In this document: in pieces, positions 1 through 47,000 of the stretch
How the letters are laid out: every line of letters begins with the position of its first letter
How positions within the stretch are numbered: the stretch's first letter is position 1
Origin: Macrostomum lignano
Taxonomy: Eukaryota
Reading direction: 5' to 3'
NCBI GenBank assembly: GCA_002269645.1
Contig: NIVC01001140.1
Location: 52,242 to 116,241, forward strand
Length of the DNA: 64,000 nt
Translations under genes and position numbers: made by a program
The notes under the pieces: generated by a model
The model's database searches: none
What the model was told of the DNA's origin: nothing
What the model saw: only the letters and a program-made list of their open reading frames with translations

Positions 1-3000
1 AGACTGTGCGCTGCATGCATGCCCGTGTGCGTGTCGTGAATGGCATCGAACGCGGCCTTGCGCAGTCTTGGTGGAATGAAGACTCTTCTTTGCATGTAGA
101 GTAGTCCATTTTCTTAGCGTTAGTTTGTTTGAGACTTTTTTGAACTGCGCTTCTGCCTGGCTGCAGTTTCGCCAATCGCCTTGGCGGACGCGATTGAGAA
201 TTCTCTGGGTGAGCGCGTCTAACTCCATCTCCGCTGTGATTCGTTTAGCGTCGATCACAGGTGATTCAAATGCGATTGAATTAATCGTCTCGAATGTGGC
301 CTTGTCGTCTGATGAGCTGTCATCGAATCTGAGTCTGGATAAGGCATCTACGTGTGGAATGCTACTGCCACGTGCATACTGAATTCGGTAATCAAACTGC
401 ATCAGGTACAAGGCCCAGCGTCCGATTCGGGCTGAGGCATCCACTGGGACGCCGGATCCGGAGCCAAAAAGTCGGATGAGCGGTTGATGGTCTGTGCGTA
501 TTGTGAATGGTCGGCCATGGAAGTAGTGCTTCAAGCGTGCGATGGCCCAAACAATAGCCAAGGCCTCCCGCTCGATGTTAGAATAATTGGATTCAGGAGG
601 ACAGGCTACGTGAAACGTATATCACGGGATGGCCATCTTGTGTTGCCACGGCGGCGAGGGCTCCTTTGGAAGCATCAGTGGTCAGCGTCAGTTCCTTTGT
701 CAAGCTGTAGGGCTGGACCACAGGCGCTGAAGCGATTTCCAGCTTTAGGCTCTCGAACGCTTTGGAACACTCCTCCGACCACACGAACGGAACGCTTGCT
801 TGTCGTAGTCTATTAAGCGGTGCAGCTTTGCCTGCAAAGTTTGGGATGAGGCGGCCGAAGAAGTTTACCAAGCCAAGAAAGTGAGCGAGCTCTGATTTAT
901 TTGCTGGCGGGCACACATGGCGAATTTTCTCCACTAGGCGATCATCGGGCTGAATACCAGCCGCAGATATTCGGAAGCCCAAGAACGAAACCGAATCGCA
1001 ATAGCTGATGCTTTTCGCTTCGTTGATAGTCACGCGCTTCTCAGATAGACGCGTTCGCACAGCAGCGAGGCGCTTCTCCAGCGTGGGTTTGTCTGGCGCG
1101 TGAATGAGAATGTCGTCTTGGTAGATAAGCAGTCCTTTGATGTCTTCCATGGTGCGTTGGAAGATGAAGGAGGCGTTCTTCATCCCCATTTGCAGCCGAT
1201 TGACACGATAGAGCCCGCGGGACGTGTTTATTACCGATAGGTCTCTCGCGGCTTCATCAAGCTCGATCTGCCAGTACGCCGAACGTAGATCGACTGTGGC
1301 GAAAGTTTTGGCGTTCTTTAGCTTGGAGAACATGGTCTCGATGTGTGGAATGGGATATGAGTCTGATTTGATCTTCGAATTGACGTGCACGCTGTAGTCG
1401 CGCACATGCGGAGAGTTCCATCCTTCTTCTTTTACCCACACTACGGGTGAAGCGTTACTAACCGGACCCTCTGTTGGCTCGATGACACCAAGTTGGTGGA
1501 GGCGATCCAGTTCTGCGCTGATTTGGCTTTCTAGGGCGAGTGGCACAGCACGAGCGCGGCAAAATTGTGGTTTAGCACCGTCCACCAGTTCCATTCGGGC
1601 CTTAACGCCTCGGATACAGGGCAGAGGTTCGACGGCAATTTTTTCTGCTTGAACATCGCTGGCATGGAAGACACCGTCAGACTCGAGGAGGTCGCGGCCA
1701 AGCAACCCGTACGTTTTCCGAAGAGACTACAATCAGTTCCACTGGTTGAAGGCGTCCTCGTAGCTCCACAGTTGCAGTCACTTTACCAAGCGATTTCATG
1801 ACGTGCCCGTCGAAGGCCTCCAAGCGCCGATTGGAACGCATTAGTGGTGGCTTACCCAGCAGAGCCCATTGCGCACTGGAGAGCACGGAGACTGATGCTC
1901 CCGTGTCGATCTGCATTTTGAAGGGCTTATCGTTGATGCGCACAGTCTCCATAGATACTTCGATCGAATTGAGCGCATCGATGAGATGCAGTACGTCTGT
2001 TTTTTGTTGGGCGGAATCTAATCCTCCTCACCAGTAGTCGTGTAGTGCATGGATCGAGACTTACAAACAGTACTGAAGTGGTTTTTCTTTCCACACTTGG
2101 AGCAGCTTTTTCCGAAAGCGGGGCATCTGCCTTCGGGGTGTGACTTGCCACAGTACCGACAGGCGCTGATTGTGCGACGAGAGCTTGCATGCTGCGATGT
2201 CTCAGGCCAACCGGATTGAGCGTAATTAAGGGTGGCTTCGTAGGTGCATGGTGATTTAGATTGGCCGGTTGCCTTGTCCATCTGCCTGGCGACGAAGCCA
2301 TCGACTTGCTCTAGGTTGCGTATGAAGTCCGTGATTTCTGAGACGGACATCAGTTTCAGCTGCATTGCTTCGAGTACGCGCTGCTGCTCCCGGCTATCGC
2401 GCAGTCCTGCGATGAGTGCCGTACTGATTAGCTCCTCGGAAGGGCTTCTGCATGCCTTGAGGTCGTCGAACTTGCAGTCAGTGGCCGCCTGGCGAAGACG
2501 ACTGACGAAATCAGAAATGCTTTCTCCTTGCAGTTGTTGCGTCTTGAAGAATCGCGCGCGCTCAGCGATTATCAGTTTCTCTTTGGGGCGCAGATACGTG
2601 ACAAATGTCGTCTGAATATCCTCGAATGAGAGCTCCGTGAGTGGGCGTGGCGACACCGGACTCTGCAGCTTTTCAAGCGCGGTGAGTCCACAGATAGCGA
2701 GAAAGTTGTCAGCGATCGTTTTTCTTTCGGTTGAATCAGACCAGCCTTTCGCTCTGGCCAGCGCTTGAAAGGCAGTCAGCCAAACCTGTGCTCGGTCAGG
2801 TTTATCCAGCGGCAGTTCGCCGAGCTGCGACGCCATTGTTGTGAATTGAACTCCGGCTGAAGTATTTAACTCATGAGCTTAAGATTCTTTATATTTCTTA
2901 TTTGAAAGAGATCAAAAAGGTGAGCTCTAGCAACTTTGGGCTGGGTTAGTTACCATAGAAGAAACTGTAGCGATAGAATGCTTAGAGGCGATTAGTGCAA

Positions 3001-3070
3001 ACAAACGGCATTGAATAACGAACTTGAACTTATATAAACTATAGTGCATCTCAGTGTGCGATACACCACA
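1..3070 (-). mobile_element. Ty3/gypsy LTR retrotransposon Gypsy-A, copy 1 (runs off the left window edge; pol broken by small indels; 5' LTR 2837-3070)
   Basis: Gag ORF 2018-2836 with Cys/His knuckle (CSKCGKKNHFSTVC), protease DTGA, RT YQDD, RNase H TDAS. Near-identical to 29114-33391, but with 1-2 nt indels (e.g. ~597, ~1398, ~1430, ~1714) that split pol. Confidence 0.95.
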
Positions 3071-3513
3071 AAAATACATGTATTAAAACAAAATGTTTTT
3101 CTTAGAAACGCGAGGATTTAAAAAGGCATAAAAGTAAGATTTGATCACGTAAAAAGATAAAGATAAGTGTGGTAGAGCCCCCCCCTGCGTGAGACCCCCT
3201 GCTCCCCTCCTCGATGACCAAAAGTGCTTCCTAAGTTCCTTCTCTGATCCCGCGCGTGGCCCTTTCCCTTTTGGGGCCCTTCTTTTCCCTCCTTTGGTAT
3301 TATCCTTTGGATAATCTGAAATATACTAAATCTCTAAGGTTTGTATGCTTGAATGACCATAACGATCCAGAGACTTATTAACTACTATAAATATTAAGTG
3401 GTTGATTAGGCCTTACCTAGGCCTTATATTGGTAGTTGATTAAAGTGTGCATAGGAAACAGTTTGTTATAGGCTTAGTTTGTATACTTAATTTTCTGTAT
3501 GGGAACTGATCAA

Positions 3514-4368
3514 GGTATCCACGCTTTTCGGTGCCTGTGCTTTTCGGTGCCCGTCATTTCGGTGCCCCAGGTCGCTTTTCGGTGCCCAAATTAAACATTA
3601 GAATTGGACACAAAATATAGAGATTGAGCTCTAATTTAGCAGTAAGTGCTTTGTCTTTGCGGTACTCTTATTTACTTTAAAAAATAAAGTATTATTCATT
3701 TAGTTAAGCTGACCTGCTGTTTTAGTGAATTCAAAAAAATGGTTTTCGATTAGGCCTACTCGATTCGATTTACTTCCATGTCGCTATAGCCGCGCGTCTC
3801 AGCCGCGTCAAAATTTTAAACTAATGCCCTAAATGCGCTTGTAATAAAATCTTATAGATTATGGTCCAAGAGTTATGCCCAAAAAGATTTCAGTTCATTA
3901 AATAATACTCGCTACATTATCCTAGGCAGTTTTATGAAATAAAACATGATCGGGTGATTCAAAAAATCAATACTAACTAAAATACATGTAGACTTGTCAC
4001 ATTTCATAATTTCGATCAAAACTACATGTAGCATTGTTGATGGATTTTAACTTTCCTAACTAAGTCTTCATAGCACTAGCACGCTTGCTGAGGGCAGCCA
4101 GCTTATATTGTATATACAGGATACAGCAACTGTGTGCAATTAAATTGAACGGATTTTTCCAATGTAAAGAAACGTGCCAGTTTAACAAAATTAATACTGC
4201 TTTTATTTAAAATATCGAACGTTTTGTAAAGTATTTATCATATTTGTTATAGGATTTCTTTTTTATTATCATCATTTTGGCGTAATATAAACTGGGGCAC
4301 CGAAAGGCAATCTGGGGCACCGAAATGCCGGGCACCGAAAAGCACGGGCACCGAAATGCATGGAAACC
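3514..4368. mobile_element. 855-bp non-autonomous TIR element (MITE-1), copy 1
   Basis: About 57-bp imperfect TIRs (GGTATCCACGCTTTTCGGTGCC... / ...GGCACCGAAATGCATGGAAACC) built from TTTCGGTGCC motifs. Exact 8-bp TSD CTGATCAA at 3506-3513 and 4369-4376. Confidence 0.88.
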
Positions 4369-5193
4369 CTGATCAAAAGGGCGATAGTCGACAGATCAAA
4401 AGGGCGACAGTTAAAAGGGTGACAGTCAAAAGGGCTTTCATTCCCTTATTTTTGTTTATTTAAAATTTTTAGTTTGACCTGTTTTAGGTGTTTATATGCA
4501 TAAAGAAACCAGGACATATATGATATGGTAAATAAATATCCTTGATAATTTCTTTGAATTGCTGAGCACTCACAATTAGCTTAACAACTTACAAAAGTAG
4601 CAAAAAATAATAGATAGAAATAGAAAAAATTGCTGCTATTTCTAGAAAATGCTACTCTTTTGTATTAAATGTTTCACTGGTTTGTTGCTAGCTATTGTTT
4701 CCAATAGATTTAACAATAGACAAAAATATTTGAACTAATAAGCCATTTTTTCTATAGGTTCATCATGTTTGAGGGCAGATAAGGAATGCATTCCATAAGT
4801 GTCGTGTCTATTTTTCCTTTATAATAACTTGCAGTTACATAAAGTCCTAGTACTAAAATTATTTAAAAATAGCACAATCAGATTTTATTAATATTATTTT
4901 TTTATTTGTACTCCCATCATCTTTTAACTGCAACCTTTATTTGAAATGTTGATACCTTTGTTATAGAAACTGACAATACTTGCATTTTTAAATAGCTTTT
5001 TTATACTACTTTTTGTACACCAAATGCAAAATTATTATATATACAATATGCCAAATGCAATTTTTGAAGATTTGAGCATGCCAAATGAACTATAAAGAGC
5101 TAATGCATACTGGAATTTTGAAGCAAAAAGGCCACCTTCCTGACTATGGCATATATATTCATGTTTATTTTCTATTACCAACTTTCTAAGGTC

Positions 5194-6179
5194 CAGTGTT
5201 GGGTACCAGTCTTAATAAATATTAAATCTTAATGCTTAATAATTATGCTTATTAACAGATTAAGTCTAAAGAGAAGTTATATATATAGCAATAGAAATAT
5301 ATTCAAATTTACCTAAATGCCATAGTTTGGGAAGTGACATATATGCCAAGAAATCCTAGTATACAACAAGGATCTTACCATTTTCAGCGTATATCAGGAT
5401 ATATCCTAGTTTATATGACATAGCAGATACATTGTGTCAAATGGCTTGAATTTTTTGTATTGGTGCACAAACTTGGCATATAAATGAGGTCTCATCATTT
5501 TTTATGGTATTTAGTGTTTACTAGTACACATTCCTAACAATGGCCTAAATGATTTATTAATCTCTTTGTTTATGAAGATCATCATGCAAATGTAATAACT
5601 TCTTACTAATAAACTTTAATTATGAATTAAACTTGTGAAATTTAATTATTGCTTGTGTGTGAACATTGATTGCTTTGATTCACTTCTTTCTTAATCTTTC
5701 ATAACTTTCTGCTGCACTTGCTAATGCTTCTGCAACAACCTTCCTATTCATATTTTATTATTATACTCATCTAATCAGTTTTCAAGTTCCAAAAAAATAA
5801 GTTACTTCTTTTACTATATGCCTAGCCTACTTTTAGTAGTATTACATACCTACAAGTTTTTACAATTTTCATGTATTACTTTTTAGCTTGTAAATTGCTT
5901 GGATGACCTCTGTGTTTTTCTCACATATAAAGATGATAAAAAGTTGCTAAAAAGATAGAAAAGCAAAGACAGTGCATTATGAAGTCTGTTTTGAAAAAAA
6001 ACTGCAAGATTTTTGTATTTTCTATGTTAACTTTAATGGATTAACACTCATTTACTCTTATCTATTAACTACTTTCAGTTAACTTAACAAAATTAAGAGT
6101 TAATAAGTTAAGATTTTTATGTTTTAATGCTTTAGCCCTTAATAGAAGTTAAGATTTTTATTAACAGTGCCCAACACTA
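5194..6179. mobile_element. ~986-bp hAT-like MITE (MITE-2), copy 1
   Basis: Termini CAGTGTTGGG / CCCAACACTA, similar AT-rich subterminal TTAA-motif regions, and a degenerate 8-bp TSD (CTAAGGTC vs GTAAGGTG, 6/8). Confidence 0.6.
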
Positions 6180-6749
6180 GTAAGGTGTTAAATATCTTGA
6201 GGTATTAAGGTCTTTAATCTTTTTTAAATCATTTAACATTGAGATTTTGAACTTATTGTTATGAAAATATGAATGTCTAAGTGGTATTAGTAATACATTG
6301 TGAGTGGGCCTTATGCCATAGGCATACAACTCTACAACCAAAAGCCAGCATATACAATATACATACTACTAGTGCTATTACAGTATGTCATAACATTATA
6401 ACAATGCAATGACAAGGATAATAATGGAAAAATATCAATCCTAGGATAATCCTATCGACCTATCCTAGCATCTCAGATTTGATATTTTCTAATCCCAGGA
6501 TCCTAGGTTTGAGGGAACATCTAGGATTTTGTGACCCCTAAGTGTTCATAACAATTATAATTATTTCAATATTACACACATTTAAACAAATTAAAAACTT
6601 TAAAATGAGTTTTTTAAAGAATTGTTTATGGGAATAAGGCCTATTGCATACGTTTTTATTACCTCCCCGCTCCTATTTTTGACTTTGATTTTTTAAATGG
6701 CTATACAACATCTACATTTTATTTCATTGCTTTAACTGCTTATTGATTG

Positions 6750-9618
6750 ATGCAGCCGAACACTGGCACCCAGGCCGACTCAGGCTCCTCTCAGAGTGAG
6801 CCCGAGTGCATCAGTCAGACCAGGGAGCAGCGGCAGCAGTCAACCTACCTGGATGAGAAAATCGCGGTGCCCCAGCCCGGCCAGGAGGTGTTCTCCCTGC
6901 GCAAGCTGTGGGCATACACGGGACCGGGCTTTCTCATGAGCATCGCTTACCTGGATCCTGGGAATATTGAGAGCGACCTTCAAACTGGCACCTTGGCCAG
7001 GTTCGACCTGCTGTGGCTGCTGCTGCTGGCGCACATCTTGGGGCTCCTCATGCAGCGGCTGGCCGCCAGGCTTGGCGTGGTCAGCGGCTGCAACCTGGCG
7101 GAGGCTGCGTCCGAGTTTTACCCAGCTGTGCCCCGCTTCCTGCTCTGGCTCATGGTTGAGGTGAGAAGTGCTTGTGTACTGTGTGTGAGCTCATGGTTGA
7201 GGTGAGAAGTGCTTGTGTACTGTGTGTGAGCTCATGGTTGAGGTGAGAAGTGCTTGTGTACTGTGTGTGAGCTCATGGTTGAGGTGAGCAGTGCTTGTGT
7301 ACTGTGTGTGAGCTCATGGTTGAGGTGAGCAGTGCTTGTGTACTGTGTGTGAGCTCATGGTTGAGGTGAGCAGTGCTTGTGTACTGTGTATGAGCTCATG
7401 GTTGAGGTGAGCAATGCTTGTGTACTGTGTGTGAGCTCATGGTTGAGGTGAGCAGTGCTTGTGTACTGTGTATGAGCTCATGGTTGAGGTGAGCAATGCT
7501 TGTGTACTGTGTGAGCTCATGGTTGAGGTGAGCAGTGCTGCAATCAGTGAGCAGTGCTGCAATCAGTGAGCAGTGCTGCAATCAGTGAGCAGTGCTGCAA
7601 TCAGTGAGCAGTGCTGCAATCAGTGAGCAGTGCTGCAATCAGTGAGCAGTGCTGCAATCAGTGAGCAGTGCTGCAATCAGTGAGCAGTGCTGCAATCAGT
7701 GAGCAGTGCTGCAATCAGTGAGAAGTGCTGCAATCAGTGAGCAGTGCTGCAATCAGTGAGCAGTGCTGCAATCAGTGAGCAGTGCTGCAATCAGTGAGCA
7801 GTGCTGCAATCAGTGAGCAGTGCTGCAATCAGTGAGCAGTGCTGCAATCAGTGAGCAGTGCTGCAATCAGTGAGAAGTGCTGCAATCAGTGAGCAGTGCT
7901 GCAATCAGTGAGCAGTGCTGCAATCAGTGAGCAGTGCTGCAATCAGTGAGCAGTGCTGCAATCAGTGAGCAGTGCTGCTTGCAGTGTGCTGTGACCTCAC
8001 TATGGATCAATGACGTCATCCATAAAGTCGCTGGTCAGTGCCAGTCTGAAAGCAGCAATGCCATGCAGCCATCCCTTGCCCTCCATAGGTGGCTATTGTG
8101 GGCTCGGACATGCAAGAGGTGATCGGGACGGCCATCGCCCTTAACCTGCTGAGCAACGGGGCGATCCCGCTGTGGGCCGGCGTGCTCATTACCATTGTCG
8201 ACACCTTCACGTTCCTGCTGCTGGACAAGTACGGCCTGCGCCGCCTAGAGGCCTTTTTCGGCTTTCTCATCCTCACCATGGCCGTCACGTTCGGCTACGA
8301 GTACGTGGTGGTGCAGCCCGACCAGCGGCAGGTGCTGCGCGGCCTGGTGGTGCCGGGGTGCCGCGGCTGCGGGGGCCGTCAGCTGCTGCAGGCGGTGGGC
8401 ACCATCGGAGCGGTGATCATGCCGCACAACATCTACCTGCACAGCGCCCTCGTGCAGTCGCGTGACGTGAACAGGCAAGACAGGCGGGCGGTGCGTGAGG
8501 CCAACAAGTACTTCTTCGTGGAGTCCTCCATCGCTCTGTTCGTGTCCTTTCTCATCAACCTGTTCGTGGTGTCCGTGTTCGCCCAGGGTTACAGCGAGCA
8601 GGCCATGAGTGCCATCTACAACTCCTGTGTGGCCAACGACAATCCGCATGCCGACATCTTCAGCGGTGAGGAGGCCGTTTTTGTGAATGTCTTTTTTAGA
8701 AAAAATGCTTTAACTGCCACTCAAACGAACAATAACGCACTGTATAAAGCTGCTGCTGCTTGTCTTCTCCAGAAAGTACTCCTAGTACTCCTAGAAATTC
8801 CTAGTTTATAGTTTCTTTTTTTTGAAATTCTATGCCTCAGCGTTAATTTGAAACTTATATGTAGTTTTCTCAGCAACCTTGAAGCTTTACAAATGTCCAA
8901 TTGTGGTAAATTTTCAGGCAACTCCAGCAAGCTGGATATGGACATCTACCGGGGCGGCGTCTTCCTCGGCTGCCAGTTCGGCCTGGCCTGCATGTACATC
9001 TGGGCGGTGGGCATCCTGGCTGCTGGCCAGTCCTCCACCATGACCGGCACCTACGCGGGCCAGTTCGTCATGGAGGGCTTCCTGCGGCTGCGCTGGAAGC
9101 GCTGGCAGCGGGTGCTGCTCACTCGCTCCTTGGCCATCGCCCCCACCGTCCTGCTGGCCGCCCTCACCGACATCAACCGGCTCACCGGCCTCAACGATCT
9201 GCTGAACGTACTCATGTCCCAGCAGCTGCCGTTCGCCCTCATCCCCATCCTCACTTTCACGGCTTCAGGCCGCTACATGAGCGAGTTCCGTAACCACCCT
9301 GTCATCAGCCTGCTGGCTGCGCTGCTCTCTGCCGCCGTGGTGGCCATCAACGTCTTCTTCATGGCGGTGTTCGTGCAGCAGCTGCCGCAGGTGTGGTACG
9401 TTCTGGCACCTTTAGGCCTGGCCTGCCTGCTGTACTTCTGCTTCATCATCTACCTGGTGGTCCTGGCCTGCGCGGAGATTTTCCCAGTCTGCTGCGGCCG
9501 GCTCGGGGATCGTTGCCGCGGCCGCGGTGGTCAGCAGTTGCTCGGCAGCGGTGGCGACTCCGAGATTGTGGAGCCGCTGCTGGGAGACAGTGAGCTGGCC
9601 GGAGGGACCGCGACTTGA
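6750..9618 (+). CDS. SLC11A2: NRAMP/SLC11 (DMT1/Malvolio-like) divalent metal transporter, copy 1; exons 6750-7160, 8089-8665, 8918-9618; 562 aa
   Basis: Signature motifs [22 protein letters not shown] and [23 protein letters not shown] introns with matching phases (0 and 1). Total 1689 nt in frame. The symbol marks the family; SLC11A1 vs A2 orthology is not resolved. Confidence 0.95.
7148..7978. repeat. Composite intronic minisatellite: ~10 x 41-bp unit containing the exon-1 donor, then 23 x 19-bp unit (CAGTGCTGCAATCAGTGAG)
   Basis: GAG|GTGAG recurs at 7161, 7202, 7243, 7284, 7325, 7366, 7407, 7448, 7489, 7528. The 19-bp period runs 7533-7969. Confidence 0.95.
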
Positions 9619-10726
9619 GCGCAACTAAGCTGGTAATAGCAGCAGCTTATGGTTCGATTTTTACCGGCTGTTACAGACATTATTTTTCATGCAAGGCAGT
9701 TGAACTGCGTACTTTAGATCTGTTTCAGTCTGTTTCTTTGCCTACTTGGAATGGTCTGCAACAGTTTTATGCAGAGGCAATTCAGTTCGCTTATAAGCAG
9801 TCAATTATTCGAAGGGTTTTGCTACCAACGTTCCTGCAATTCCGCTGAGGCAATTGGAATTCGGACCTCCGTACAGTTTCTCAGTACAGTATTGGAATAT
9901 AACTGGGTGGTATTGAGGCGATTTTGTATGATGAGTTTAACCAGAGCTTCTAAATAATTATGATGGCGCTTTAACGCTCAGCAGTCTGCACTTGAACTAA
10001 AAACACCCTCAATTGTTACAGCTGCGGTTTCAATTTTTGCAAGCTTTTTCAAGACTATAGTGAGGTCGAACAGCTGAGTAGCTTTTGTTTTCAGTAGACT
10101 TTGTTTTTATATCGTGTTGTTAAAGTTGTCTTATTGTTTTTCCGAGTCTCAGATTTATTATTAATAGAGAGCTCCTCGTATATGTCCTGTAAACTGCAGA
10201 CCACTTTTACTCCGGACTGTGGACTGTAAAAGTGCTGCATGTACTTTCGGTGAGTGTAATAAACTGGTATCGTATTTTAGTGTACACAGCTTTCTGAGAT
10301 TTATGAGCAGTGTGTGCTCTGAACGATAACCATAAAAAATGAATAGAACTTGCTTTTTTCTTTGGCCCATTGCACCAGCGGGATCGACTAAAGCCTCGTA
10401 AAGACAAGCCTTTATCGAATTAGTTACAGCAAGCTGTTGCTGTGGAAGCAGTTTAAGTCGTTAATTTATTGGTGCCTAGTAGTCAATAAGGCTTGCGCGC
10501 CTTGAACAATAGAGGAAAGACTAACAGAATTTATAGCTAGCATTATGTACGCTTGATCTTGCAATAGTGCAACTGTACATGCGGAACATCTGAATGAATC
10601 AACTATCAGTAATAACTGATAACATTAAAATGCTCTATAAAACAGATAAATAACTCTCAGGCATTCTTACAGGTAAAATAAATAACTAAAATGTGAATAC
10701 TGAGATGAGTAATTAAAGCTTGTGGC

Positions 10727-10893
10727 TCAGCGAGGCTCTGCAGCCAGGAGTGGCGGCTGGTGGCAGAGCAGCGCCTCGGTCTGGCGCGACCAGAACAGCA
10801 GCAGGTCGGACCAGCAGTGGCGCATCCACAGCATGCCCAGCACAACGCACAGGTGCCAGTGGTTGTGGCTGTGGCCAGCGAAGTCGAAGCGGC
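10727..10893 (-). pseudogene. Orphan terminal exon (exon 6) of the PAQR3-like gene, cut off by the junction at ~11081
   Basis: Encodes GRFDFAGHSHNHWHLCVVLGMLW...; matches 41028-41194; the upstream exons are absent from this copy. Confidence 0.9.
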
Positions 10894-11077
10894 CTTGGGT
10901 TGAAGAGACAGAAGGCATAATAAGAATATTGACTAGAGTTTTTGCCAAAAAGGGCAATATTTAAGCCGTCAATTTATTACCATAGAAATATGCAGTACAC
11001 GATCGTAGCACAATGTTCTTTTAACAGCCTGATTTATTTTCAATGATCGACAAAAAAGCAACTTATAAAATGACCAA

Positions 11078-25314: not shown

Positions 25315-28051
<2,737 letters not shown>

Positions 28052-32273: not shown

Positions 32274-32338
32274 AGATACTTCGATCGAATTGAGCGCATC
32301 GATGAGATGCAGTACGTCTGTTTTTTGTTGGGCGGAAT

Positions 32339-36501: not shown

Positions 36502-37071
36502 GTAAGGTGTTAAATATCTTGAGGTATTAAGGTCTTTAATCTTTTTTAAATCATTTAACATTGAGATTTTGAACTTATTGTTATGAAAATATGAATGTCT
36601 AAGTGGTATTAGTAATACATTGTGAGTGGGCCTTATGCCATAGGCATACAACTCTACAACCAAAAGCCAGCATATACAATATACATACTACTAGTGCTAT
36701 TACAGTATGTCATAACATTATAACAATGCAATGACAAGGATAATAATGGAAAAATATCAATCCTAGGATAATCCTATCGACCTATCCTAGCATCTCAGAT
36801 TTGATATTTTCTAATCCCAGGATCCTAGGTTTGAGGGAACATCTAGGATTTTGTGACCCCTAAGTGTTCATAACAATTATAATTATTTCAATATTACACA
36901 CATTTAAACAAATTAAAAACTTTAAAATGAGTTTTTTAAAGAATTGTTTATGGGAATAAGGCCTATTGCATACGTTTTTATTACCTCCCCGCTCCTATTT
37001 TTGACTTTGATTTTTTAAATGGCTATACAACATCTACATTTTATTTCATTGCTTTAACTGCTTATTGATTG

Positions 37072-39919
37072 ATGCAGCCGAACACTGGCACCCAGGCCGA
37101 CTCAGGCTCCTCTCAGAGTGAGCCCGAGTGCATCAGTCAGACCAGGGAGCAGCGGCAGCAGTCAACCTACCTGGATGAGAAAATCGCGGTGCCCCAGCCC
37201 GGCCAGGAGGTGTTCTCCCTGCGCAAGCTGTGGGCATACACGGGACCGGGCTTTCTCATGAGCATCGCTTACCTGGATCCTGGGAATATTGAGAGCGACC
37301 TTCAAACTGGCACCTTGGCCAGGTTCGACCTGCTGTGGCTGCTGCTGCTGGCGCACATCTTGGGGCTCCTCATGCAGCGGCTGGCCGCCAGGCTTGGCGT
37401 GGTCAGCGGCTGCAACCTGGCGGAGGCTGCGTCCGAGTTTTACCCAGCTGTGCCCCGCTTCCTGCTCTGGCTCATGGTTGAGGTGAGAAGTGCTTGTGTA
37501 CTGTGTGTGAGCTCATGGTTGAGGTGAGAAGTGCTTGTGTACTGTGTGTGAGCTCATGGTTGAGGTGAGAAGTGCTTGTGTACTGTGTGTGAGCTCATGG
37601 TTGAGGTGAGCAGTGCTTGTGTACTGTGTGTGAGCTCATGGTTGAGGTGAGCAGTGCTTGTGTACTGTGTGTGAGCTCATGGTTGAGGTGAGCAGTGCTT
37701 GTGTACTGTGTATGAGCTCATGGTTGAGGTGAGCAATGCTTGTGTACTGTGTGTGAGCTCATGGTTGAGGTGAGCAGTGCTTGTGTACTGTGTATGAGCT
37801 CATGGTTGAGGTGAGCAATGCTTGTGTACTGTGTGAGCTCATGGTTGAGGTGAGCAGTGCTGCAATCAGTGAGCAGTGCTGCAATCAGTGAGCAGTGCTG
37901 CAATCAGTGAGCAGTGCTGCAATCAGTGAGCAGTGCTGCAATCAGTGAGCAGTGCTGCAATCAGTGAGCAGTGCTGCAATCAGTGAGCAGTGCTGCAATC
38001 AGTGAGAAGTGCTGCAATCAGTGAGCAGTGCTGCAATCAGTGAGCAGTGCTGCAATCAGTGAGCAGTGCTGCAATCAGTGAGCAGTGCTGCAATCAGTGA
38101 GCAGTGCTGCAATCAGTGAGCAGTGCTGCAATCAGTGAGAAGTGCTGCAATCAGTGAGCAGTGCTGCAATCAGTGAGCAGTGCTGCAATCAGTGAGCAGT
38201 GCTGCAATCAGTGAGCAGTGCTGCAATCAGTGAGCAGTGCTGCAATCAGTGAGCAGTGCTGCAATCAGTGAGCAGTGCTGCTTGCAGTGTGCTGTGACCT
38301 CACTATGGATCAATGACGTCATCCATAAAGTCGCTGGTCAGTGCCAGTCTGAAAGCAGCAATGCCATGCAGCCATCCCTTGCCCTCCATAGGTGGCTATT
38401 GTGGGCTCGGACATGCAAGAGGTGATCGGGACGGCCATCGCCCTTAACCTGCTGAGCAACGGGGCGATCCCGCTGTGGGCCGGCGTGCTCATTACCATTG
38501 TCGACACCTTCACATTCCTGCTGCTGGACAAGTACGGCCTGCGCCGCCTAGAGGCCTTTTTCGGCTTTCTCATCCTCACCATGGCCGTCACGTTCGGCTA
38601 CGAGTACGTGGTGGTGCAGCCCGACCAGCGGCAGGTGCTGCGCGGCCTGGTGGTGCCGGGGTGCCGCGGCTGCGGGGGCCGTCAGCTGCTGCAGGCGGTG
38701 GGCACCATCGGAGCGGTGATCATGCCGCACAACATCTACCTGCACAGCGCCCTCGTGCAGTCGCGTGACGTGAACAGGCAAGACAGGCGGGCGGTGCGTG
38801 AGGCCAACAAGTACTTCTTCGTGGAGTCCTCCATCGCTCTGTTCGTGTCCTTTCTCATCAACCTGTTCGTGGTGTCCGTGTTCGCCCAGGGTTACAGCGA
38901 GCAGGCCATGAGTGCCATCTACAACTCCTGTGTGGCCAACGACAATCCGCATGCCGACATCTTCAGCGGTGAGGAGGCCGTTTTTGTGAATGTCTTTTTT
39001 AGAAAAAATGCTTTAACTGCCACTCAAACGAACAATAACGCACTGTATAAAGCTGCTGCTGCTTGTCTTCTCCAGAAAGTACTCCTAGTACTCCTAGAAA
39101 TTCCTAGTTTATAGTTTCTTTTTTGAAATTCTATGCCTCAGCGTTAATTTGAAACTTATATGTAGTTTTCTCAGCAACCTTGAAGCTTTACAAATGTCCA
39201 ATTGTGGTAAATTTTCAGGCAACTCCAGCAAGCTGGATATGGACATCTACCGGGGCGGCGTCTTCCTCGGCTGCCAGTTCGGCCTGGCCTGCATGTACAT
39301 CTGGGCGGTGGGCATCCTGGCTGCTGGCCAGTCCTCCACCATGACCGGCACCTACGCGGGCCAGTTCGTCATGGAGGGCTTCCTGCGGCTGCGCTGGAAG
39401 CGCTGGCAGCGGGTGCTGCTCACTCGCTCCTTGGCCATCGCCCCCACCGTCCTGCTGGCCGCCCTCACCGACATCAACCGGCTCACCGGCCTCAACGATC
39501 TGCTGAACGTACTCATGTCCCAGCAGCTGCCGTTCGCCCTCATCCCCATCCTCACTTTCACGGCTTCAGGCCGCTACATGAGCGAGTTCCGTAACCACCC
39601 TGTCATCAGCCTGCTGGCTGCGCTGCTCTCTGCCGCCGTGGTGGCCATCAACGTCTTCTTCATGGCGGTGTTCGTGCAGCAGCTGCCGCAGGTGTGGTAC
39701 GTTCTGGCACCTTTAGGCCTGGCCTGCCTGCTGTACTTCTGCTTCATCATCTACCTGGTGGTCCTGGCCTGCGCGGAGATTTTCCCAGTCTGCTGCGGCC
39801 GGCTCGGGGATCGTTGCCGCGGCCGCGGTGGTCAGCAGTTGCTCGGCAGCGGTGGCGACTCCGAGATTGTGGAGCCGCTGCTGGGAGACAGTGAGCTGGC
39901 CGGAGGGACCGCGACTTGA
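37072..39919 (+). CDS. SLC11A2: NRAMP/SLC11 transporter, copy 3; exons 37072-37482, 38392-38968, 39219-39919
   Basis: Translation matches copies 1 and 2; splice sites intact. Confidence 0.95.
37470..38281. repeat. 41-bp donor-containing array plus 22 x 19-bp array, copy 3
   Basis: Intron 1 is 909 nt, as in copy 2. Confidence 0.95.
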
Positions 39920-41027
39920 GCGCAACTAAGCTGGTAATAGCAGCAGCTTATGGTTCGATTTTTACCGGCTGTTACAGACATTATTTTTCATGCAAGGCAG
40001 TTGAACTGCGTACTTTAGATCTGTTTCAGTCTGTTTCTTTGCCTACTTGGAATGGTCTGCAACAGTTTTATGCAGAGGCAATTCAGTTCGCTTATAAGCA
40101 GTCAATTATTCGAAGGGTTTTGCTACCAACGTTCCTGCAATTCCGCTGAGGCAATTGGAATTCGGACCTCCGTACAGTTTCTCAGTACAGTATTGGAATA
40201 TAACTGGGTGGTATTGAGGCGATTTTGTATGATGAGTTTAACCAGAGCTTCTAAATAATTATGATGGCGCTTTAACGCTCAGCAGTCTGCACTTGAACTA
40301 AAAACACCCTCAATTGTTACAGCTGCGGTTTCAATTTTTGCAAGCTTTTTCAAGACTATAGTGAGGTCGAACAGCTGAGTAGCTTTTGTTTTCAGTAGAC
40401 TTTGTTTTTATATCGTGTTGTTAAAGTTGTCTTATTGTTTTTCCGAGTCTCAGATTTATTATTAATAGAGAGCTCCTCGTATATGTCCTGTAAACTGCAG
40501 ACCACTTTTACTCCGGACTGTGGACTGTAAAAGTGCTGCATGTACTTTCGGTGAGTGTAATAAACTGGTATCGTATTTTAGTGTACACAGCTTTCTGAGA
40601 TTTATGAGCAGTGTGTGCTCTGAACGATAACCATAAATTATGAATAGAACTTGCTTTTTTCTTTGGCCCATTGCACCAGCGGGATCGACTAAAGCCTCGT
40701 AAAGACAAGCCTTTATCGAATTAGTTACAGCAAGCTGTTGCTGTGGAAGCAGTTTAAGTCGTTAATTTATTGGTGCCTAGTAGTCAATAAGGCTTGCGCG
40801 CCTTGAACAATAGAGGAAAGACTAACAGAATTTATAGCTAGCATTATGTACGCTTGATCTTGCAATAGTGCAACTGTACATGCGGAACATCTGAATGAAT
40901 CAACTATCAGTAATAACTGATAACATTAAAATGCTCTATAAAACAGATAAATAACTCTCAGGCATTCTTACAGGTAAAATAAATAACTAAAATGTGAATA
41001 CTGAGATGAGTAATTAAAGCTTGTGGC

Positions 41028-44000
41028 TCAGCGAGGCTCTGCAGCCAGGAGTGGCGGCTGGTGGCAGAGCAGCGCCTCGGTCTGGCGCGACCAGAACAGC
41101 AGCAGGTCGGACCAGCAGTGGCGCATCCACAGCATGCCCAGCACAACGCACAGGTGCCAGTGGTTGTGGCTGTGGCCAGCGAAGTCGAAGCGGCCTTGGG
41201 TTGAAGAGACAGAAGGCATAATAAGAATATTGACTAGAGTTTTTGCCAAAAAGGGCAATATTTTATTTATTATTTATTAATTTATTACCATAGAGATATG
41301 CAGTACACGATCGTAGCACAATGTTCTTTTAACAGCCTGATTTATTTTCAATGATCGACAAAAAAGCAACTTATAAAATGACCAAAATTAATAAAATATG
41401 AGCAGAATAATTTTTCTGTACATCTTATGTAGGTTTATATTTTAAATAGTAGTTTCTGAATACCAGACTCAGTATTGTTTTAGTTGATGATTAAGATAAT
41501 AAGTGCTATCTTAATAGCACTTGATGGATAGCTATCGATAACTATTGTTTGATAACTAGCCTAAAGCAAATACCATGGACCACAGGGACAAACTTCATGG
41601 AGCAGCTGTCGACGCAAAATACACTGGTCTACTTTTACTGGGATGTAACAGGCATCACATATTTTGGTGAAAAATTATTCTCATAAGATTTTGTTCTGCA
41701 GTTAAAATTGAGACAAGTGGACTGAGTTTCACAAAATACTTGGATGAAATGTTTTGCATTTTAAAGCTGTTAATAATAATAAAGTAAAAAATACTACACA
41801 CGTGGTATGTGTAAGATGATCTAAAATCTCATCTCAGACCATATATCCCATTGTGGAGTGCTTGAACGCACTCAATGAAAGGTTAGACCGTTGCAATTTT
41901 AGATGCCAGCTCAAGCACTGGAATGGAGCCGGACCAAACCGAAAGCAGTCGATACCTTGCTGGACCAATCGACCAGAAGCGCCGAGACATCATCCCACCA
42001 TAGAAGCGCCGAGACATCATCCCACCATAGAAGCACCGAGACATCATCCCACCCTAGAAGCGCCGAGACATCATCCCACCCTAGAAGCGCCGAGACATCA
42101 TCCCACCCTAGAAGCGCCGAGACATCATCCCACCATAGAAGCACCGAGACATCATCCCACCCTAGAAGCAACGAGACATCATCCCACCATAGAAGCAACG
42201 AGCCATCATCCCAACCTAGAAGCAACGAGACATCATCCCACCATAGAAGCGCCGAGACATCATCCCACCATAGAAGCGCCGAGACATCATCCCACCATAG
42301 AAGCACCGAGACATCATCCCACCCTAGAAGCGCCGAGACATCATCCCACCCTAGAAGCGCCGAGACATCATCCCACCCTAGAAGCGCCGAGACATCATCC
42401 CACCCTAGAAGCACCGAGACATCATCCCACCATAGAAGCGCCGAGACATCATCCCACCATAGAAGCACCGAGACATCATCCCACCCTAGAAGCGCCGAGA
42501 CATCATCCCACCCTAGAAGCGCCGAGACATCATCCCACCCTAGAAGCGCCGAGACATCATCCCACCCTAGAAGCGCCGAGACATCATCCCACCCTAGAAG
42601 CGCCGAGACATCATCCCACCATAGAAGCACCGAGACATCATCCCACCCTAGAAGCAACGAGACATCATCCCACCATAGAAGCAACGAGCCATCATCCCAA
42701 CCTAGAAGCAACGAGACATCATCCCACCATAGAAGCGCCGAGACATCATCCCACCATAGAAGCGCCGAGACATCATCCCACTCTAGAAGCAACGAGACAT
42801 CATCCTACCATTGAAGCAACGAGACATCATTCCACTCTAGAAGCAACGAGACATCATCCCACCCTAGAAGCACCGAGACATCATCCCACCCTAGAAGCAA
42901 CGAGACATCATCCCACCCTAGAAGCAACGAGACATCATCCCACCATAGAAGCGCCGAGACATCATCCCACCCTTGAAGCAACGAGACATCATTCCACTCT
43001 AGAAGCAACGAGACATCATCCCACCATAGAAGCGCCGAGACATCATTCCACTCTAGAAGCAACGAGACATCATCCCACCATAGAAGCGCCGAGACATCAT
43101 TCCACTCTAGAAGCAACGAGACATCATCCTACCATTGAAGCAACGAGACATCATTCCACTCTAGAAGCGCCGAGACATCATTCCACTCTATAAGCAACGA
43201 GACATCATCCCACCCTAGAAGCGCCGAGACATCATTCCACCCTAGAAGCGCCGAGACATCACTCCACCCTAGAAGCCGAGAATAGCAAAAAATCGTGAAG
43301 CAGCTTCAGAAAGAGTTTAAAGCAGACACAATGAATTGGGTGGGACACTTGCAAACCAAGAATGGTCAAAGTGCAGACCATTGAATGTACTGAGGCTTTA
43401 TCTGAGAACAACGAGACAAATTCGAGCACCGAGTGCTATCCTGATAGACTTCATGCGAACGTGTCTTCTTTTCTAGAGTCTTAAGTCGGCGTGAAATCTC
43501 ACCATAATCGGTTTGGACGGGAGCTTTGAGTCAGGCTTCATTAGGGCCTGACATCGCCTTAGTCAAAAGGGCTTTGCTAGCAGTACGCCAATAAATAAGA
43601 TAGTGAAAACATCGCGCATTCTCACCTGGGAGGCAGCGCTCTGGAAACTGCGAGACATAGAAGCCGAAACCGAGCAGGCCGATTGCGTAAAGCGCAAGAA
43701 CTTTGGGAAGAAAGTGCTGGAATGGGAGATTTCACTGCTTGTGTTCGCCGCATAGTAAATTGGCTACAGGTCTGTGGGCACCATGGCGCAACGCCTTTAG
43801 TGACATCAGGCAGCGCTGAGACGATTCTGCTGACTCCTAAGCACAGATATTGTTCAAGCGCGCCAATACTGTACACTCTGTGCCTTGGGGGTTGGCCCTC
43901 ATGGCAAGCCCTCATTGATTTTCTAATCGCTGGGAATGTACACTCTGTGCCTTGGGGTTGGCCCTCATGGCAAGCCCTCATTGACTTTCTAATCGCTGGG

Positions 44001-47000
44001 AATGTACACTCTGTGCCTTGGGGGTTGGCCCTCATGGCAAGCCCTCATTGACTTTCTAATCGCTGGGAATGTACACTCTGTGCCTTGGGGGTTGGCCCTC
44101 ATGGCAAGCCCTCATTGACTTTCTAATCGCTGGGAATGTACACTCTGTGCCTTGGGGGTTGGCCCTCATGGCAAGCCCTCATTGACTTTCTAATCGCTGG
44201 GAATGTACACTCTGTGCCTTGGGGTTGGCCCTCATGGCAAGCCCTCATTGACTTTCTAATCGCTGGGAATGTACACTCTGTGCCTTGGGGGTTGGCCCTC
44301 ATGGCAAGCCCTCATTGACTTTCTAATCGCTGGGAATGTACACTCTGTGCCTTGGGGGTTGGCCCTCATGGCAAGCCCTCATTGACTTTCTAATCGCTGG
44401 GAATGTACACTCTGTGCCTTGGGGTTGGCCCTCATGGCAAGCCCTCATTGACTTTCTAATCGCTGGGAATGTACACTCTGTGCCTTGGGGTTGGCCCTCA
44501 TGGCAAGCCCTCATTGACTTTCTAATTGCTGGGAATGTACACTCTGTGCCTTGGGGTTGGCCCTCATGGCAAGCTCTCATTGACTTTCTAATCGCTGGGA
44601 ATGTACACTCTGTGCCTTGGGGGTTGGCCCTCATGGCAAGCCCTCATTGACTTTCTAATCCCTGGGAATGTACACTCTGTGCCTTGGGGGTTGGCCCTCA
44701 TGGCAAGCCCTCATTGACTTTCTAATCGCTGGGAATGTACACTCTGTGCCTTGGGGGTTGGCCCTCATGGCAAGCTCTCATTGACTTTCTAATCGCTGGG
44801 AATGTACACTCTGTGCCTTGGGGGTTGGCCCTCATGGCAAGCCCTCATTGACTTTCTAATCCCTGGGAATGTACACTCTGTGCCTTGGGGGTTGGCCCTC
44901 ATGGCAAGCCCTCATTGACTTTCTAATCCCTGGGAATGTACACTCTGTGCCCTAGGGGTTGGCCCTCATGGCAAGCCCTCATTGACTTTCTAATCGCTGG
45001 GAATGTACACTCTGTGCCTTGGGGGTTGGCCCTCATGGCAAGCCCTCATTCACAAGGTTGGCTTTTATTTAAATCGCACGACAACCCCGGCCAATTTTCG
45101 TACACAAGCTCCAAATTAATGTGGCCTTTCACGGAATCGAATCAGGGATTCCCCTGAAGCTGCTCTGCCCCTTCATACTCGCCGCATACCTGCGGCAAAG
45201 CAATACCCAGCTTACCGAAACAAGAGGCGAAGAGATGCCGCCGCAGAGGTGGACCCAGTGCAGGGTGGGCAGAAGGCCGTAGCCCACCAGACAGCAGTAC
45301 ATGGGCAGCACAATGCGACGGAAGGCCCTGGACGATGTGCGCAGGCGCAGCGAGAAGTACAGCACGGCAGCGCAAAGGCTGCAGCAGATGCACATGTACA
45401 CCTGGCGCCAGTACTGCAGCAGAGAGGGCAATCAGTTGTTTAGTGAACACTTGCATATCAGATATAAAACGGCCCATTGAACTGCTTTTGAAGCTAAGGG
45501 GGTGATGGTGGGAGCATTTTATAAGCTCGAAAGTAGTTGCATCGTCTAAAAATGCTGCTTGATGAAAATTTTAAGGATTTTGACTATGTAAAATTTATAG
45601 CTTCTGGATTCGACCGCAATTTTTGCTTTTGGCGATGTGAAATTTCTAGCTTGTGAAGTTTTGATCGCATCAAATTCACTGCCTTCGAGGATGTGAACTT
45701 TTTGAGCCTGCAAAGACTGCCGGTGCATCTTACCGGATGGCAGCGGAATCCGAAGTGCACCGCGGGCAAGTAGCAGCCGACGATGCCAACGCAGATGCCG
45801 GCCTGGTCCAGCGCCAGCCAGCGCTTGAACGCCCGCTGGGAGTGGCAGCGAAACGTGTGGTAGCCGGCCGAGAGCAGCATGCACGCCTGAGGGGCGGGGC
45901 GCAGTGAGGCATTGTGAATGAAATGCTTTAATAATCTGTTCTGATTTTGGTCCTTCCTTTCTATTGGGTTCGACAATGCTTTCAGCGACGATAAAGTTGA
46001 CAAGTTGGACAAGTTGACAAAGCAAAGTCAGGTCGAACAAAGTCAGGTTGAAGTTTACCCAACAGTGTTGCCAAATCTGAGACTGGGTTGAAGGGCCGAC
46101 TAGCCGTAGGCTTGAACATGTGGTCTAATAGGGAGTATCTTATGTGCGGATTGACTTGATGTGTCTGAGGCGTCGCCTGCTAATTGCCAATCAATAAGGG
46201 CTCGATATCCGGAGTCCAGCGATGTAGGAGGGGAGGGGCGAGGAGGCAAGAGAGATTCTTACTCAAATATGAGCTCAGTTTTATGCATGTCTTTCAGCTG
46301 TTGGCGGTCGCATATGGGGAAAATCAGCTGATAAGAAGTGCATTGAGAAGCGCAGATAGACAATAAAAATGGATTACACCTGCCCAGTTGGGTCAGATGT
46401 GCAACCGACAGCTCAGCCGCAGCTATTGCACGGCGCATCTGAAGGCTGCGTACGGCTGCTCAATCCAAAGACTGGGGGGGGGGGGGGGGGTCCGCCACAC
46501 ACGCTCAATTGCCCCAGCTAATTCTGGTACCCATTTTACAGCTGAGTGGACTGAAGCAATGCAGAGTTATCTGTAAGTGTCTAGCTCAATTGCACAAATT
46601 GTTCCAGTACGATCGGGAATCGAACCCTCGACCTTCAAGTCGTGAGTCAAATGCTCTAACCACTAGGCTACACCCCATTGCAGATAGAAACAGCTAAATT
46701 TCACCAATTCAGTGCCAGCGCCAACCCAGGAGGCTCCCCAGGCTCACCTGAAAGCAGAGCAGGGAAGCGGCCGTTACGACTCTGTCGCTGCGCTGCTCAC
46801 CCCGAAGCCAGACAGGCTCGCAGAGATCCATCAGCATGAGCACAAAGAATAGAAAGAATGCCAGCAGATGTGACCAGATGTTGACTGTCTCATTGGTCCA
46901 CAGGAACATGCTGGCAATGGTGCAAGTAGGCGAAAATGCATGCAATTCAGAATAAACACTGGCGACCATCAGCCCATTTCGCCAACCCCTGAGCAGACGA

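Follow-up and report, generated by a model that had tools for sequence, protein, structure and literature searches.

Three head-to-tail copies of an NRAMP block at the NRAMP-PAQR3 locus of Macrostomum lignano: junctions, uneven divergence and possible origins

In a 64,000-nt stretch of scaffold NIVC01001140.1 (hereafter the window), a block composed of a Gypsy element, a MITE-like element, an NRAMP gene and the last exon of a PAQR gene, in that order, occurs three times head-to-tail. Was this locus duplicated for the dose of its transporter gene, is it an ordinary unstable locus, or was it over-expanded by the assembler? The window, which contains no N, comes from Mlig_3_7, the assembly of the inbred line DV1 of the flatworm Macrostomum lignano. 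Mlig_3_7 is a draft of a neopolyploid, repeat-rich genome with three subgenomes. The window represents one subgenome version of the NRAMP-PAQR3 locus, and contigs L003 and L004, used for comparison, represent the two others.

The repeated block and its junctions

The following segments and junctions delimit the repeat.

1..11081, + strand: block copy 1 (segment A, from self-BLAST), with the 5' part of Gypsy-A, the MITE-like element, NRAMP and PAQR exon 6
11078..11081, no strand: junction J1, from PAQR intron 5 (equivalent to 41389) to the Gypsy-A integrase (equivalent to 29844)
11078..22618, + strand: copy 2, an 11.5-kb unit made up of X (476 bp of integrase tail) and then segment A
22619..25219, - strand: B', a 3' fragment of the PAQR3-like gene (from distal intron 5 through exon 5 and intron 4 into exon 4, of which it has the 3' 147 nt)
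25219..25220, no strand: junction J2, within PAQR exon 4, fused to unmatched sequence
25220..29088, + strand: single-copy spacer ("gene Z part"), with 420 bp unmatched, (AG)n at 25743-26640 and an ORF at 27683-28051
29844..41389, + strand: copy 3, an 11.5-kb unit of the same make-up (X + A), running on at its left into the rest of Gypsy-A

By self-BLAST of the window, positions 1-11081 are 99.69% identical to 11553-22618 and 99.56% identical to 30319-41389, while 11078-23992 matches 29844-42763 at 99.40% and the match is carried on via minisatellites to 25219 = 45363. The two periods are 11537 (22618-11081) and 20144 (45363-25219). These alignments and the junction sequences bear out what the first-pass annotation had proposed, i.e. 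a block repeated three times across two different junctions (11081 and 25219), and an 11.5-kb unit of period 11537 running from the integrase to PAQR intron 5. Each event left one novel, non-homologous junction between direct copies (J1 at 11081, J2 at 25219), as expected of tandem duplications.

The two parents of J1 are both in the window, and comparison with the junction reveals four bases of microhomology (AATT) common to them. The integrase breakpoint lies in the C-terminal part, at about residue 835 of 983 of pol and past the rve core (721-809), and neither side of J1 is within a shared repeat. With only 4 bp of microhomology and no shared repeat, J1 cannot have been created by an overlap- or graph-based misjoin. 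At J2 the minus-strand reading frame stays open across the junction (24988-25536); its right-hand parent was found neither in the window nor in L003 or L004, and would, like a second copy of the spacer, be expected left of the window, where the record has N alone. The intact gene Z and complete Gypsy-A 3' end predicted for that flank would fall in the same N region.

The larger, 20-kb unit was said to run from inside a "gene Z" to PAQR exon 4. Its period (20144) and the position of J2 in exon 4 stand, but a single complete instance is present in the window, where the spacer 25220-29843 is single-copy, and the "gene Z" boundary is unsupported. We thus infer the 20-kb unit itself. "Gene Z" has no annotation, and the homology search gave no homologue; its sole gene-like trace is the ORF 27683-28051, which resembles a terminal exon and encodes a TM segment, and there is no called gene in the part of L004 equivalent to the spacer.

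Genes and mobile elements of the window

The genes and elements are placed as follows.

6750..9618, + strand: NRAMP copy 1, exons 6750-7160, 8089-8665 and 8918-9618 (562 aa)
18305..21155, + strand: NRAMP copy 2, exons 18305-18715, 19625-20201 and 20455-21155
37072..39919, + strand: NRAMP copy 3, exons 37072-37482, 38392-38968 and 39219-39919
41028..47888, - strand: the sole complete PAQR3-like gene (339 aa), six exons at 47888-47641, 46910-46748, 45886-45734, 45413-45216, 43716-43626 and 41194-41028
10727-10893 and 22264-22430: extra copies of PAQR exon 6
29089..33391, - strand: Gypsy-A of copy 3, a complete Ty3/Gypsy element with PR, RT, RNase H and integrase
1-3070 and 11082-14625: truncated Gypsy-A copies
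33836..34712, no strand: MITE-like non-autonomous element with TIRs of about 40 bp; further copies at 3514-4390 and 15069-15945

The NRAMP gene has three exons and GT-AG introns and is open in all three copies, in agreement with the earlier description of intact coding sequences and splice sites. The three 562-aa proteins are identical and the coding sequences differ by one synonymous change, a G at CDS position 534 of copy 1. The same protein is annotated three times on NIVC01001140.1, and residues 3-562 of the copy 2 protein correspond to P0002, a partial model of 560 aa. The exons cover positions 1-69, 67-233 and 245-356 of the 357 of the Pfam Nramp profile (PF01566), with scores of 57, 171 and 99 bits (cut-off 29.8), which places the protein in this family. 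Its closest foreign matches are molluscan NRAMP2-like proteins (62-67% identity). The sequences LDPGN and GAVIMPHN are present and invariant across all M. lignano NRAMP copies; they contain DPGN (TM1) and A-x-x-M-P-H (TM6), which we take to be the metal-site motifs of NRAMP proteins. The encoded protein is predicted to be a DMT1-type NRAMP/SLC11 divalent-metal transporter.

Each block comprises the complete NRAMP gene and some 3.7 kb upstream of it. NRAMP is also, as previously noticed, the only complete gene within the 11.5-kb unit. An up to three-fold NRAMP gene dose would be expected from the window's subgenome, this being gene dose only, as read from the sequence.

When begun at the annotated partial start, the 339-aa PAQR3-like model gives the annotated length of 329 aa. 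Its best matches are PAQR3 orthologues (42-47% identity), all with PF03006, and homology over the seven-TM core makes it a PAQR3-like member of the PAQR/HlyIII family.

Gypsy-A is bounded by LTRs of about 207 bp (29089-29295 and 33184-33391, 96% identity) and contains gag (32342-33199) and pol (29400-32348); the domain order PR-RT-RNaseH-INT between flanking LTRs is that of Ty3/Gypsy elements. A clean target-site duplication was looked for at the element ends and not found. L003 has the element and L004 lacks it. The MITE-like element, of about 877 bp, has GATCAA on both flanks and an empty site in L004, as MITEs do. Both insertions are the same in all three block copies.

Divergence within and between copies

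Between the window copies the NRAMP block differs by 0.01-0.06%, versus 0.5-3.2% between subgenome copies, which marks the block as very young. Within the 11.5-kb unit, copies 2 and 3 differ by one substitution and two homopolymer indels up to the equivalent of position 41262. Beyond the block (22619-25219 versus 41390-45363), 22 substitutions are found in 1.5 kb of unique sequence, and the minisatellite arrays differ in size, with 29 versus 48 copies of a 27-mer and 4.7 versus 17.7 copies of a 67-mer. The step is abrupt: one substitution in 11,419 positions of the NRAMP block versus 29 in 1,618 of the PAQR fragment. At about 1.5-1.8%, this fragment is about 200-fold more diverged than the 11.4 kb next to it, a difference with a Fisher p of ~1e-21 to 1e-25. 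Divergence is uniform over the 11.5-kb unit and is not over the 20-kb unit.

The affinities of the PAQR sequences also differ. B' groups with L004, and B, its counterpart in copy 3, with L003, at five sites without any conflicting one; B' has five derived or ancestral states in common with L004 and none with copy 3, and over its final 313 bp it matches L004 at 100%. The nested tandem duplications first proposed, if both were similarly recent, do not account for a PAQR fragment about 1.5-1.8% diverged and allied with L004.

Inside the block the informative sites conflict, two grouping copies 2 and 3 and one grouping copies 1 and 2, so that any order of events is tentative. The last 126 bp of copy 1 carry copy 2 variants, which places the origin of J1 in the left unit. 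Physically, copies 2 and 3 are to be regarded as distinct, since their array lengths differ strongly and B differs by 22 substitutions. Stacked haplotypes are an unlikely source of copies 99.95% identical, because the other two subgenome versions were assembled separately and are far more diverged than the window copies (0.5-3.2%), and because heterozygosity within the DV1 subgenomes is negligible (PMC10733133).

Possible origins of the array

The non-uniform divergence of the 20-kb unit points to an older duplication, or one between homeologues, followed by very recent copying or conversion of the 11.5-kb block. Together with a recent duplication at J1, and with the duplications taken as neutral events at an unstable locus, this is the explanation that we favour, with a probability of roughly 60%. 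Its history would have at least three steps. An older duplication, or one between diverged homeologues, would have produced J2 in PAQR exon 4 and left B', now about 1.5% off the copy in the functional gene. A recent non-homologous tandem duplication mediated by microhomology, by end joining or replication template switch, would then have generated J1 with its AATT. Finally, recent copying or gene conversion would have made the NRAMP block near-identical in both older units, the homogenised tract stopping about 126 bp short of the J1 breakpoint. The anatomy, the junction sequences, the intact genes and the step in divergence are read directly from the sequence; we infer the conversion, the sequence of the steps and the neutral character of the array, as a by-product of a minisatellite- and transposon-rich unstable locus and not a selected dosage. 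The array is best described as a segmental duplication of ordinary kind, recent and at an unstable locus, and selection on it would be speculative.

Microhomology-mediated tandem segmental duplication proceeds by end joining or by template switching of the FoSTeS/MMBIR type. The locus resembles its products by direct head-to-tail copies, by 4-bp junctions in unique sequence (AATT at J1 and ACCT at J3, see below) and by breakpoints that ignore gene boundaries. It departs from a simple case in the non-uniform divergence of its larger unit, so that later homogenisation or a between-homeologue origin must be added to a mechanism that is itself deduced from sequence alone. Tandem duplicates are known to undergo concerted evolution, or interlocus gene conversion. 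An 11.4-kb core with one substitution, sharply bounded by a flank diverged by 1.5-1.8%, looks like the outcome of such a process; the tract is nevertheless much longer than in typical conversion, and unequal crossing-over or break-induced replication may act instead.

The conversion tract would have to measure at least 11 kb, an unusual length, and this counts against the favoured explanation.

At the homeologous locus, L004 shows a tandem duplication of 8.7 kb that is independent of the array and has a separate microhomology junction, J3 (ACCT plus a small scar). This duplication begins in NRAMP intron 1, leaving an extra copy without exon 1; an independent event thus did not keep NRAMP intact. 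This favours general instability of the locus over selection centred on NRAMP.

The tandem NRAMP copies are probably real. The most serious rival, to which we give a minor but appreciable chance, is an assembly artefact: the junctions may exist, but the three copies in cis would be an over-expansion or a chimera, produced when Canu tiled across near-identical repeat copies of 11 kb in a polyploid genome, with near-identity partly due to consensus mixing. For Mlig_3_7, expansion or collapse of paralogues is documented, as are numerous chimeric scaffolds: most blocks in more than three copies are covered only 3-fold by reads, and 36% of the length of the assembly falls in chimeric scaffolds (PMC10733133). 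The NRAMP block, in more than three copies, belongs to the class of block found there to be mostly over-represented. The contig begins inside the repeat, block copy 1 being cut where the window start adjoins an N run at least 3245 long in the source record, and the first 1.7 kb of copy 1 have an unpolished look, with five indels of 1-2 bp (114-1713) that resemble contig-end consensus errors. Copy 2 has essentially no private variants and its lineage affinity switches near the A|B boundary, as in a haplotype-switch chimera. The assembler may have over-expanded the copy number, and the number of copies and the left flank are provisional, such an N run and error-like indels being typical of an unresolved repeat.

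On the other side, J1 and J2 lie outside repeats, and J1 has only 4 bp in common with its parents, so that both must be in the reads. Four distinct B sequences exist for three subgenomes with negligible heterozygosity. The same pipeline kept differences of 0.5% between contigs, which makes wholesale consensus homogenisation unlikely. In the ML2 gene models, which come from a different assembler, two complete NRAMPs of the window's allele (S119) are likewise fused in tandem (P0123). As ML2 and Mlig_3_7 were built from the same PacBio reads (PMC5730564), this agreement is independent of the assembler and not of the data. Finally, whereas the artefacts described in Mlig_3_7 are redundant scaffolds of one haplovariant (PMC10733133), the window is a gap-free stretch with junctions impossible from overlaps. 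The case is a warning that gene-copy counts and uniform-age assumptions drawn from Mlig_3_7 need read-level checks and not contigs alone.

Much less probable is the first proposal taken literally, i.e. a recent 20-kb duplication, then an 11.5-kb one inside its left unit, retained for an advantageous three-fold NRAMP dose (Fe/Mn supply or metal handling). The segment order fits, the copy 2 variants in the final 126 bp of copy 1 put J1 in the left unit, NRAMP is the sole complete gene of the 11.5-kb unit with all copies intact, and adaptation by amplifying metal-transport genes is known, e.g. the tandem duplication of NRAMP3 in poplars (PMC9234761). But divergence over the 20-kb unit is uneven (0.009% versus 1.8%), B' and B are of different lineages, two sites group copies 2 and 3 against copy 1, one complete gene per 11.5-kb segment is the chance expectation, and the unit duplicated at the homeologous locus cuts NRAMP short. 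It is equally doubtful that NRAMP-PAQR3 is a recurrent rearrangement hotspot of the neopolyploid, with at least three independent microhomology-mediated tandem duplications across subgenomes, in which the complete-NRAMP block was amplified and kept identical by concerted evolution for an advantageous dose of a DMT1-type importer, for example during long-term culture of DV1 in metal-supplemented medium.

The metal pump HMA4 has undergone a tandem triplication in Arabidopsis halleri. The array resembles this case and that of poplar NRAMP3 in its tandem multiplication of a gene for a divalent-metal transporter; both of these are backed by functional, expression or population evidence, whereas the M. 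lignano array is known from one draft assembly of an inbred line. Moreover, the poplar NRAMP3 copies have diverged in function (PMC9234761), while the three M. lignano proteins are identical and no more than a few substitutions have accumulated since the event. No paper linking Macrostomum with NRAMP was retrieved by a literature search, and the array alone is no demonstration of metal adaptation.

The assembly has more than three NRAMP blocks: besides the three of the window, L003 contains one, and L004 contains one that is complete and one that lacks exon 1. If the array is real, DV1 would have at least five complete near-identical NRAMP copies as counted in the haploid representation of the assembly (three in the window and one on each other subgenome contig), which would matter in practice for knock-outs, RNAi and expression studies in this model for regeneration and toxicology. 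The locus would then be a small, clean example of tandem duplication, homeologue exchange and homogenisation reshaping a young polyploid genome.

Arrangement of the three copies and their junctions

Compared with itself, the window shows three direct copies of an 11-kb segment (A); it is free of N. Copies 2 and 3 also have in common, on their left side, a 476-bp integrase tail (X), which together with A forms an 11.5-kb unit, and on their right side a PAQR3-like segment (B' in copy 2, B in copy 3). The order is A1 - J1 - X A2 B' - J2 - spacer - X A3 B - rest of PAQR, where J1 and J2 are the two novel junctions:

1-11081, direct: segment A, copy 1 (A1)
11078-11553, direct: X of copy 2, with J1 at 11081
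11553-22618, direct: segment A, copy 2 (A2), 99.69% identity
22619-25219, direct: B', ending at J2 (25219)
25220-29843: spacer
29844-30319, direct: X of copy 3
30319-41389, direct: segment A, copy 3 (A3), 99.56% identity
41390-45363, direct: B

The periods of 11537 and 20144 bp agree with the first-pass annotation (11537 bp and ~20 kb), and its breakpoints in PAQR intron 5 (J1) and PAQR exon 4 (J2) are confirmed; its observation was largely right. The same locus is found on two further contigs, L003 (NIVC01002568.1) and L004 (NIVC01001141.1), which we interpret as the versions of the locus in the remaining two subgenomes.

The sequence across J1 reads ...AAAATGACCAAAATT / TTTTCAGACCAGGCC... 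and that across J2 ...GCGAAAAGTACAGC / TTGGAGGACTCCGG..., the slash marking the breakpoint. At J1 ...ACCAAAATT is joined to TTTTCAGACC..., AATT being common to both parents. Unequal recombination between transposon or LTR copies was rejected because none of the sequences joined at J1 and J2 breaks off in a shared repeat; at J1 the right side lies in the middle of the integrase and not at an LTR, with only 4 bp in common. A retrocopy was also rejected, since introns, upstream region and neighbouring fragments are all copied.

Each A holds the 5' two-thirds of a Ty3/Gypsy element (Gypsy-A) on the minus strand, whose gag and pol bear protease, RT, RNase H and integrase domains, and an 877-bp MITE-like element with inverted ends of ~40 bp and an empty site in a relative. 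NRAMP follows, and after it the last PAQR exon, on the minus strand. A second, full-length LTR retrotransposon lies elsewhere in the window (51683-59029, minus strand). It has 249-bp LTRs, 99.6% identical, and long open ORFs (392 codons for gag, 783 for RT/RNase H and 1213 for integrase). The element seems young and may be active.

The spacer contains 420 bp matching nothing in the window, L003 or L004, a 0.9-kb (AG)n tract and one terminal-exon-like ORF (27683-28051, plus strand), whose product consists of a stalk, a transmembrane segment and a basic tail. This protein is 100% conserved in L004; it found no homologue in a search of 5.8 billion proteins, Pfam gave only a weak match, and the matching part of L004 has no called gene. 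The earlier proposal that J2 cuts a gene (gene Z) in the spacer is unsupported. The right-hand parent of J2 was sought via L004, where collinearity stops at a BEL/Pao-like element. Its ORF (L004 111-2620; gag zinc knuckle, protease and start of RT) adjoins the (AG)n tract; from there on, to the left of the equivalent of 25640, L004 and the window are no longer collinear. On the minus strand a frame is open across J2 (24988-25536), with ~105 codons of otherwise unmatched sequence in frame with the remainder of PAQR exon 4; a chimeric exon is therefore possible. From its first ATG, this ORF is on record neither as a called gene nor on independent contigs.

Divergence between the copies

The three A copies are almost identical. 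Private to copy 1 are seven substituted positions, of which four are outside the minisatellite arrays of intron 1, as well as one additional 19-bp repeat unit and five indels of 1-2 bp. Copy 2 is set apart by a single homopolymer indel, copy 3 by two of them and by a small complex change at 41263-41295. The five indels of copy 1 all fall in its first 1.7 kb (114-1713), break the Gypsy pol frame and look like unpolished long-read consensus errors. In the source record the window start is directly preceded by 3245 N or more (locus L001, 1-3245), which we read as a contig start beside a scaffold gap, masking being also possible. A second N run, in L003 (982-4349), lies inside the same Gypsy element, within which contigs seem to break.

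Between copies 2 and 3 we observed one substitution in the 11,419 bp of 29844-41262 versus 29 positions in 1,618 bp of 41263-45363, minisatellite arrays excluded (Fisher p ~1e-25, or 1e-21 with the complex change counted once). The arrays themselves differ greatly, a 27-mer occurring 29 times in B' and 48 times in B, and a 67-mer 4.7 and 17.7 times. At five sites B' has the state of L004 and B that of L003, with none in conflict, and over its last 313 bp B' matches L004 without a difference. Because of the divergence step and this sharing, B' and B are old, separate lineages, and thus the near-identity belongs to the 11.5-kb NRAMP block and not to the 20-kb unit. B' and B are as different as subgenome alleles; there are four distinct B sequences, and only three subgenomes. 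The structural reading of the first-pass annotation is too simple: had the 20-kb unit arisen by one recent duplication, similarity between copies 2 and 3 would be equal along it, which it is not.

This step in identity is 126 bp left of the J1 breakpoint, and in those 126 bp copy 1 has the variants of copy 2; therefore J1 arose in the left unit. When variable sites are polarised with L003, two group copies 2 and 3 and one groups copies 1 and 2. An order of events could not be drawn from shared variants, the sites being too few and in conflict; exchange between the copies is likely.

From the junction sequences and the divergence pattern, both observed directly, we infer a mechanism and an order of events. 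J2 would come from an older duplication, or from one between diverged homeologues, and J1 from a recent microhomology-mediated duplication; recent copying, unequal exchange or gene conversion may then have given both units an identical block. Events of this kind are already known, and the locus adds a further case, in a draft polyploid assembly.

Sister loci and the reality of the tandem copies

The window corresponds approximately to positions 52242-116241 of NIVC01001140.1 in Mlig_3_7 (GCA_002269645.1). Mlig_3_7 represents the inbred DV1 line and was built from PacBio reads with Canu, Pilon polishing and SSPACE scaffolding; duplicated non-repetitive blocks amount to 180 Mb (PMC5730564). SNP divergence among the three subgenomes (S, L1 and L2) is ~1.4-2.4%, and heterozygosity inside any one of them is negligible; most blocks with four assembly copies have only three-fold read coverage, and chimeric scaffolds make up 36% of the assembly length (PMC10733133). 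No newer chromosome-level assembly was found in the literature.

We put the probability that the tandem copies in cis are real at about 0.7. A wrong copy number or a chimera in the assembly is less likely; in its favour, over-representation and chimerism are documented in Mlig_3_7 (PMC10733133), the contig begins inside the repeat and the lineage switches within copy 2. A graph or overlap misjoin cannot make J1 or J2, because neither lies in repeats. In addition, gene models of the older assembly ML2, which derives from the same PacBio reads (PMC5730564), fuse two complete NRAMPs of this allele, with serine at residue 119 (S119), in tandem (P0123). Stacked haplotypes or subgenomes were rejected: the other two versions lie on separate contigs, the contigs differ by 0.5-3.2% versus at most 0.06% between the window copies, and heterozygosity in DV1 is negligible (PMC10733133).

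L003 carries one NRAMP, then an uninterrupted PAQR; the Gypsy-A and MITE insertions are present, and relative to the window block there are 57 substitutions in 10 kb. L004 has neither insertion, and its divergence varies by segment, from 0.5% to 3.2%. It has its own 8.7-kb tandem duplication (11984-14906 and 20675-23597, 99.76% identity), spanning NRAMP intron 1 to PAQR exon 1. At its junction (20670) PAQR exon 1 meets NRAMP intron 1; ACCT microhomology and a small scar are seen there, and the extra NRAMP is without exon 1. This duplication is independent of those in the window.

Divergence among the three versions is mosaic along the locus (window 34713-47789): the PAQR 5' half is 0.46% from L004 and 0.92% from L003, the NRAMP 3' part 0.48% from L003 and 1.3% from L004. 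This pattern suggests exchange between homeologues, or chimeric contigs.

NRAMP and PAQR genes

The NRAMP model built from splice sites has three exons, GT-AG introns and 562 aa. Its Pfam Nramp scores are far over cut-off, the DPGN and MPHN motifs are found, and the protein, which matches Macrostomum lignano BOX15_Mlig002722g3 at 100% identity, is annotated three times on scaffold NIVC01001140.1. As first proposed, all three genes are intact: they are open and encode identical proteins, with one synonymous difference (CDS position 534, G in copy 1, A in copies 2 and 3). The PAQR3-like gene has six exons and 339 aa; begun at the annotated partial start, the model gives the same 329-aa length as the annotated partial gene in a sister contig. 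No M. lignano entry was among the matches of the PAQR homologue search.

Nothing here indicates selection for NRAMP copies, which had been suggested, and the adaptive reading is somewhat disfavoured. One complete gene per 11.5-kb segment is the chance expectation, and the homeologous locus duplicated a unit cutting NRAMP, which we count against it. No selection test is possible because the proteins are identical, with a single synonymous change. We found no paper linking Macrostomum and NRAMP in the literature; tandem NRAMP duplication is known elsewhere, NRAMP3 in poplar being one case (PMC9234761).

Residue 119 (37426-37428 and equivalents) is Ser in 3/3 window copies and Ala in both sister contigs and one ML2 model. 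Ser119 is thus a non-synonymous change that only this subgenome allele carries, and can serve as a marker.

NRAMP intron 1 starts with a 41-bp minisatellite (7148-7978, 18703-19514 and 37470-38281), after which comes the 19-bp array. The 41-bp unit contains the last 12 nt of exon 1 and the GTGAG donor, so that the 5' splice site is repeated, an exact 20-mer being present three times per NRAMP copy. A downstream repeat donor, if used, would shift the frame, since 41 is not a multiple of 3.
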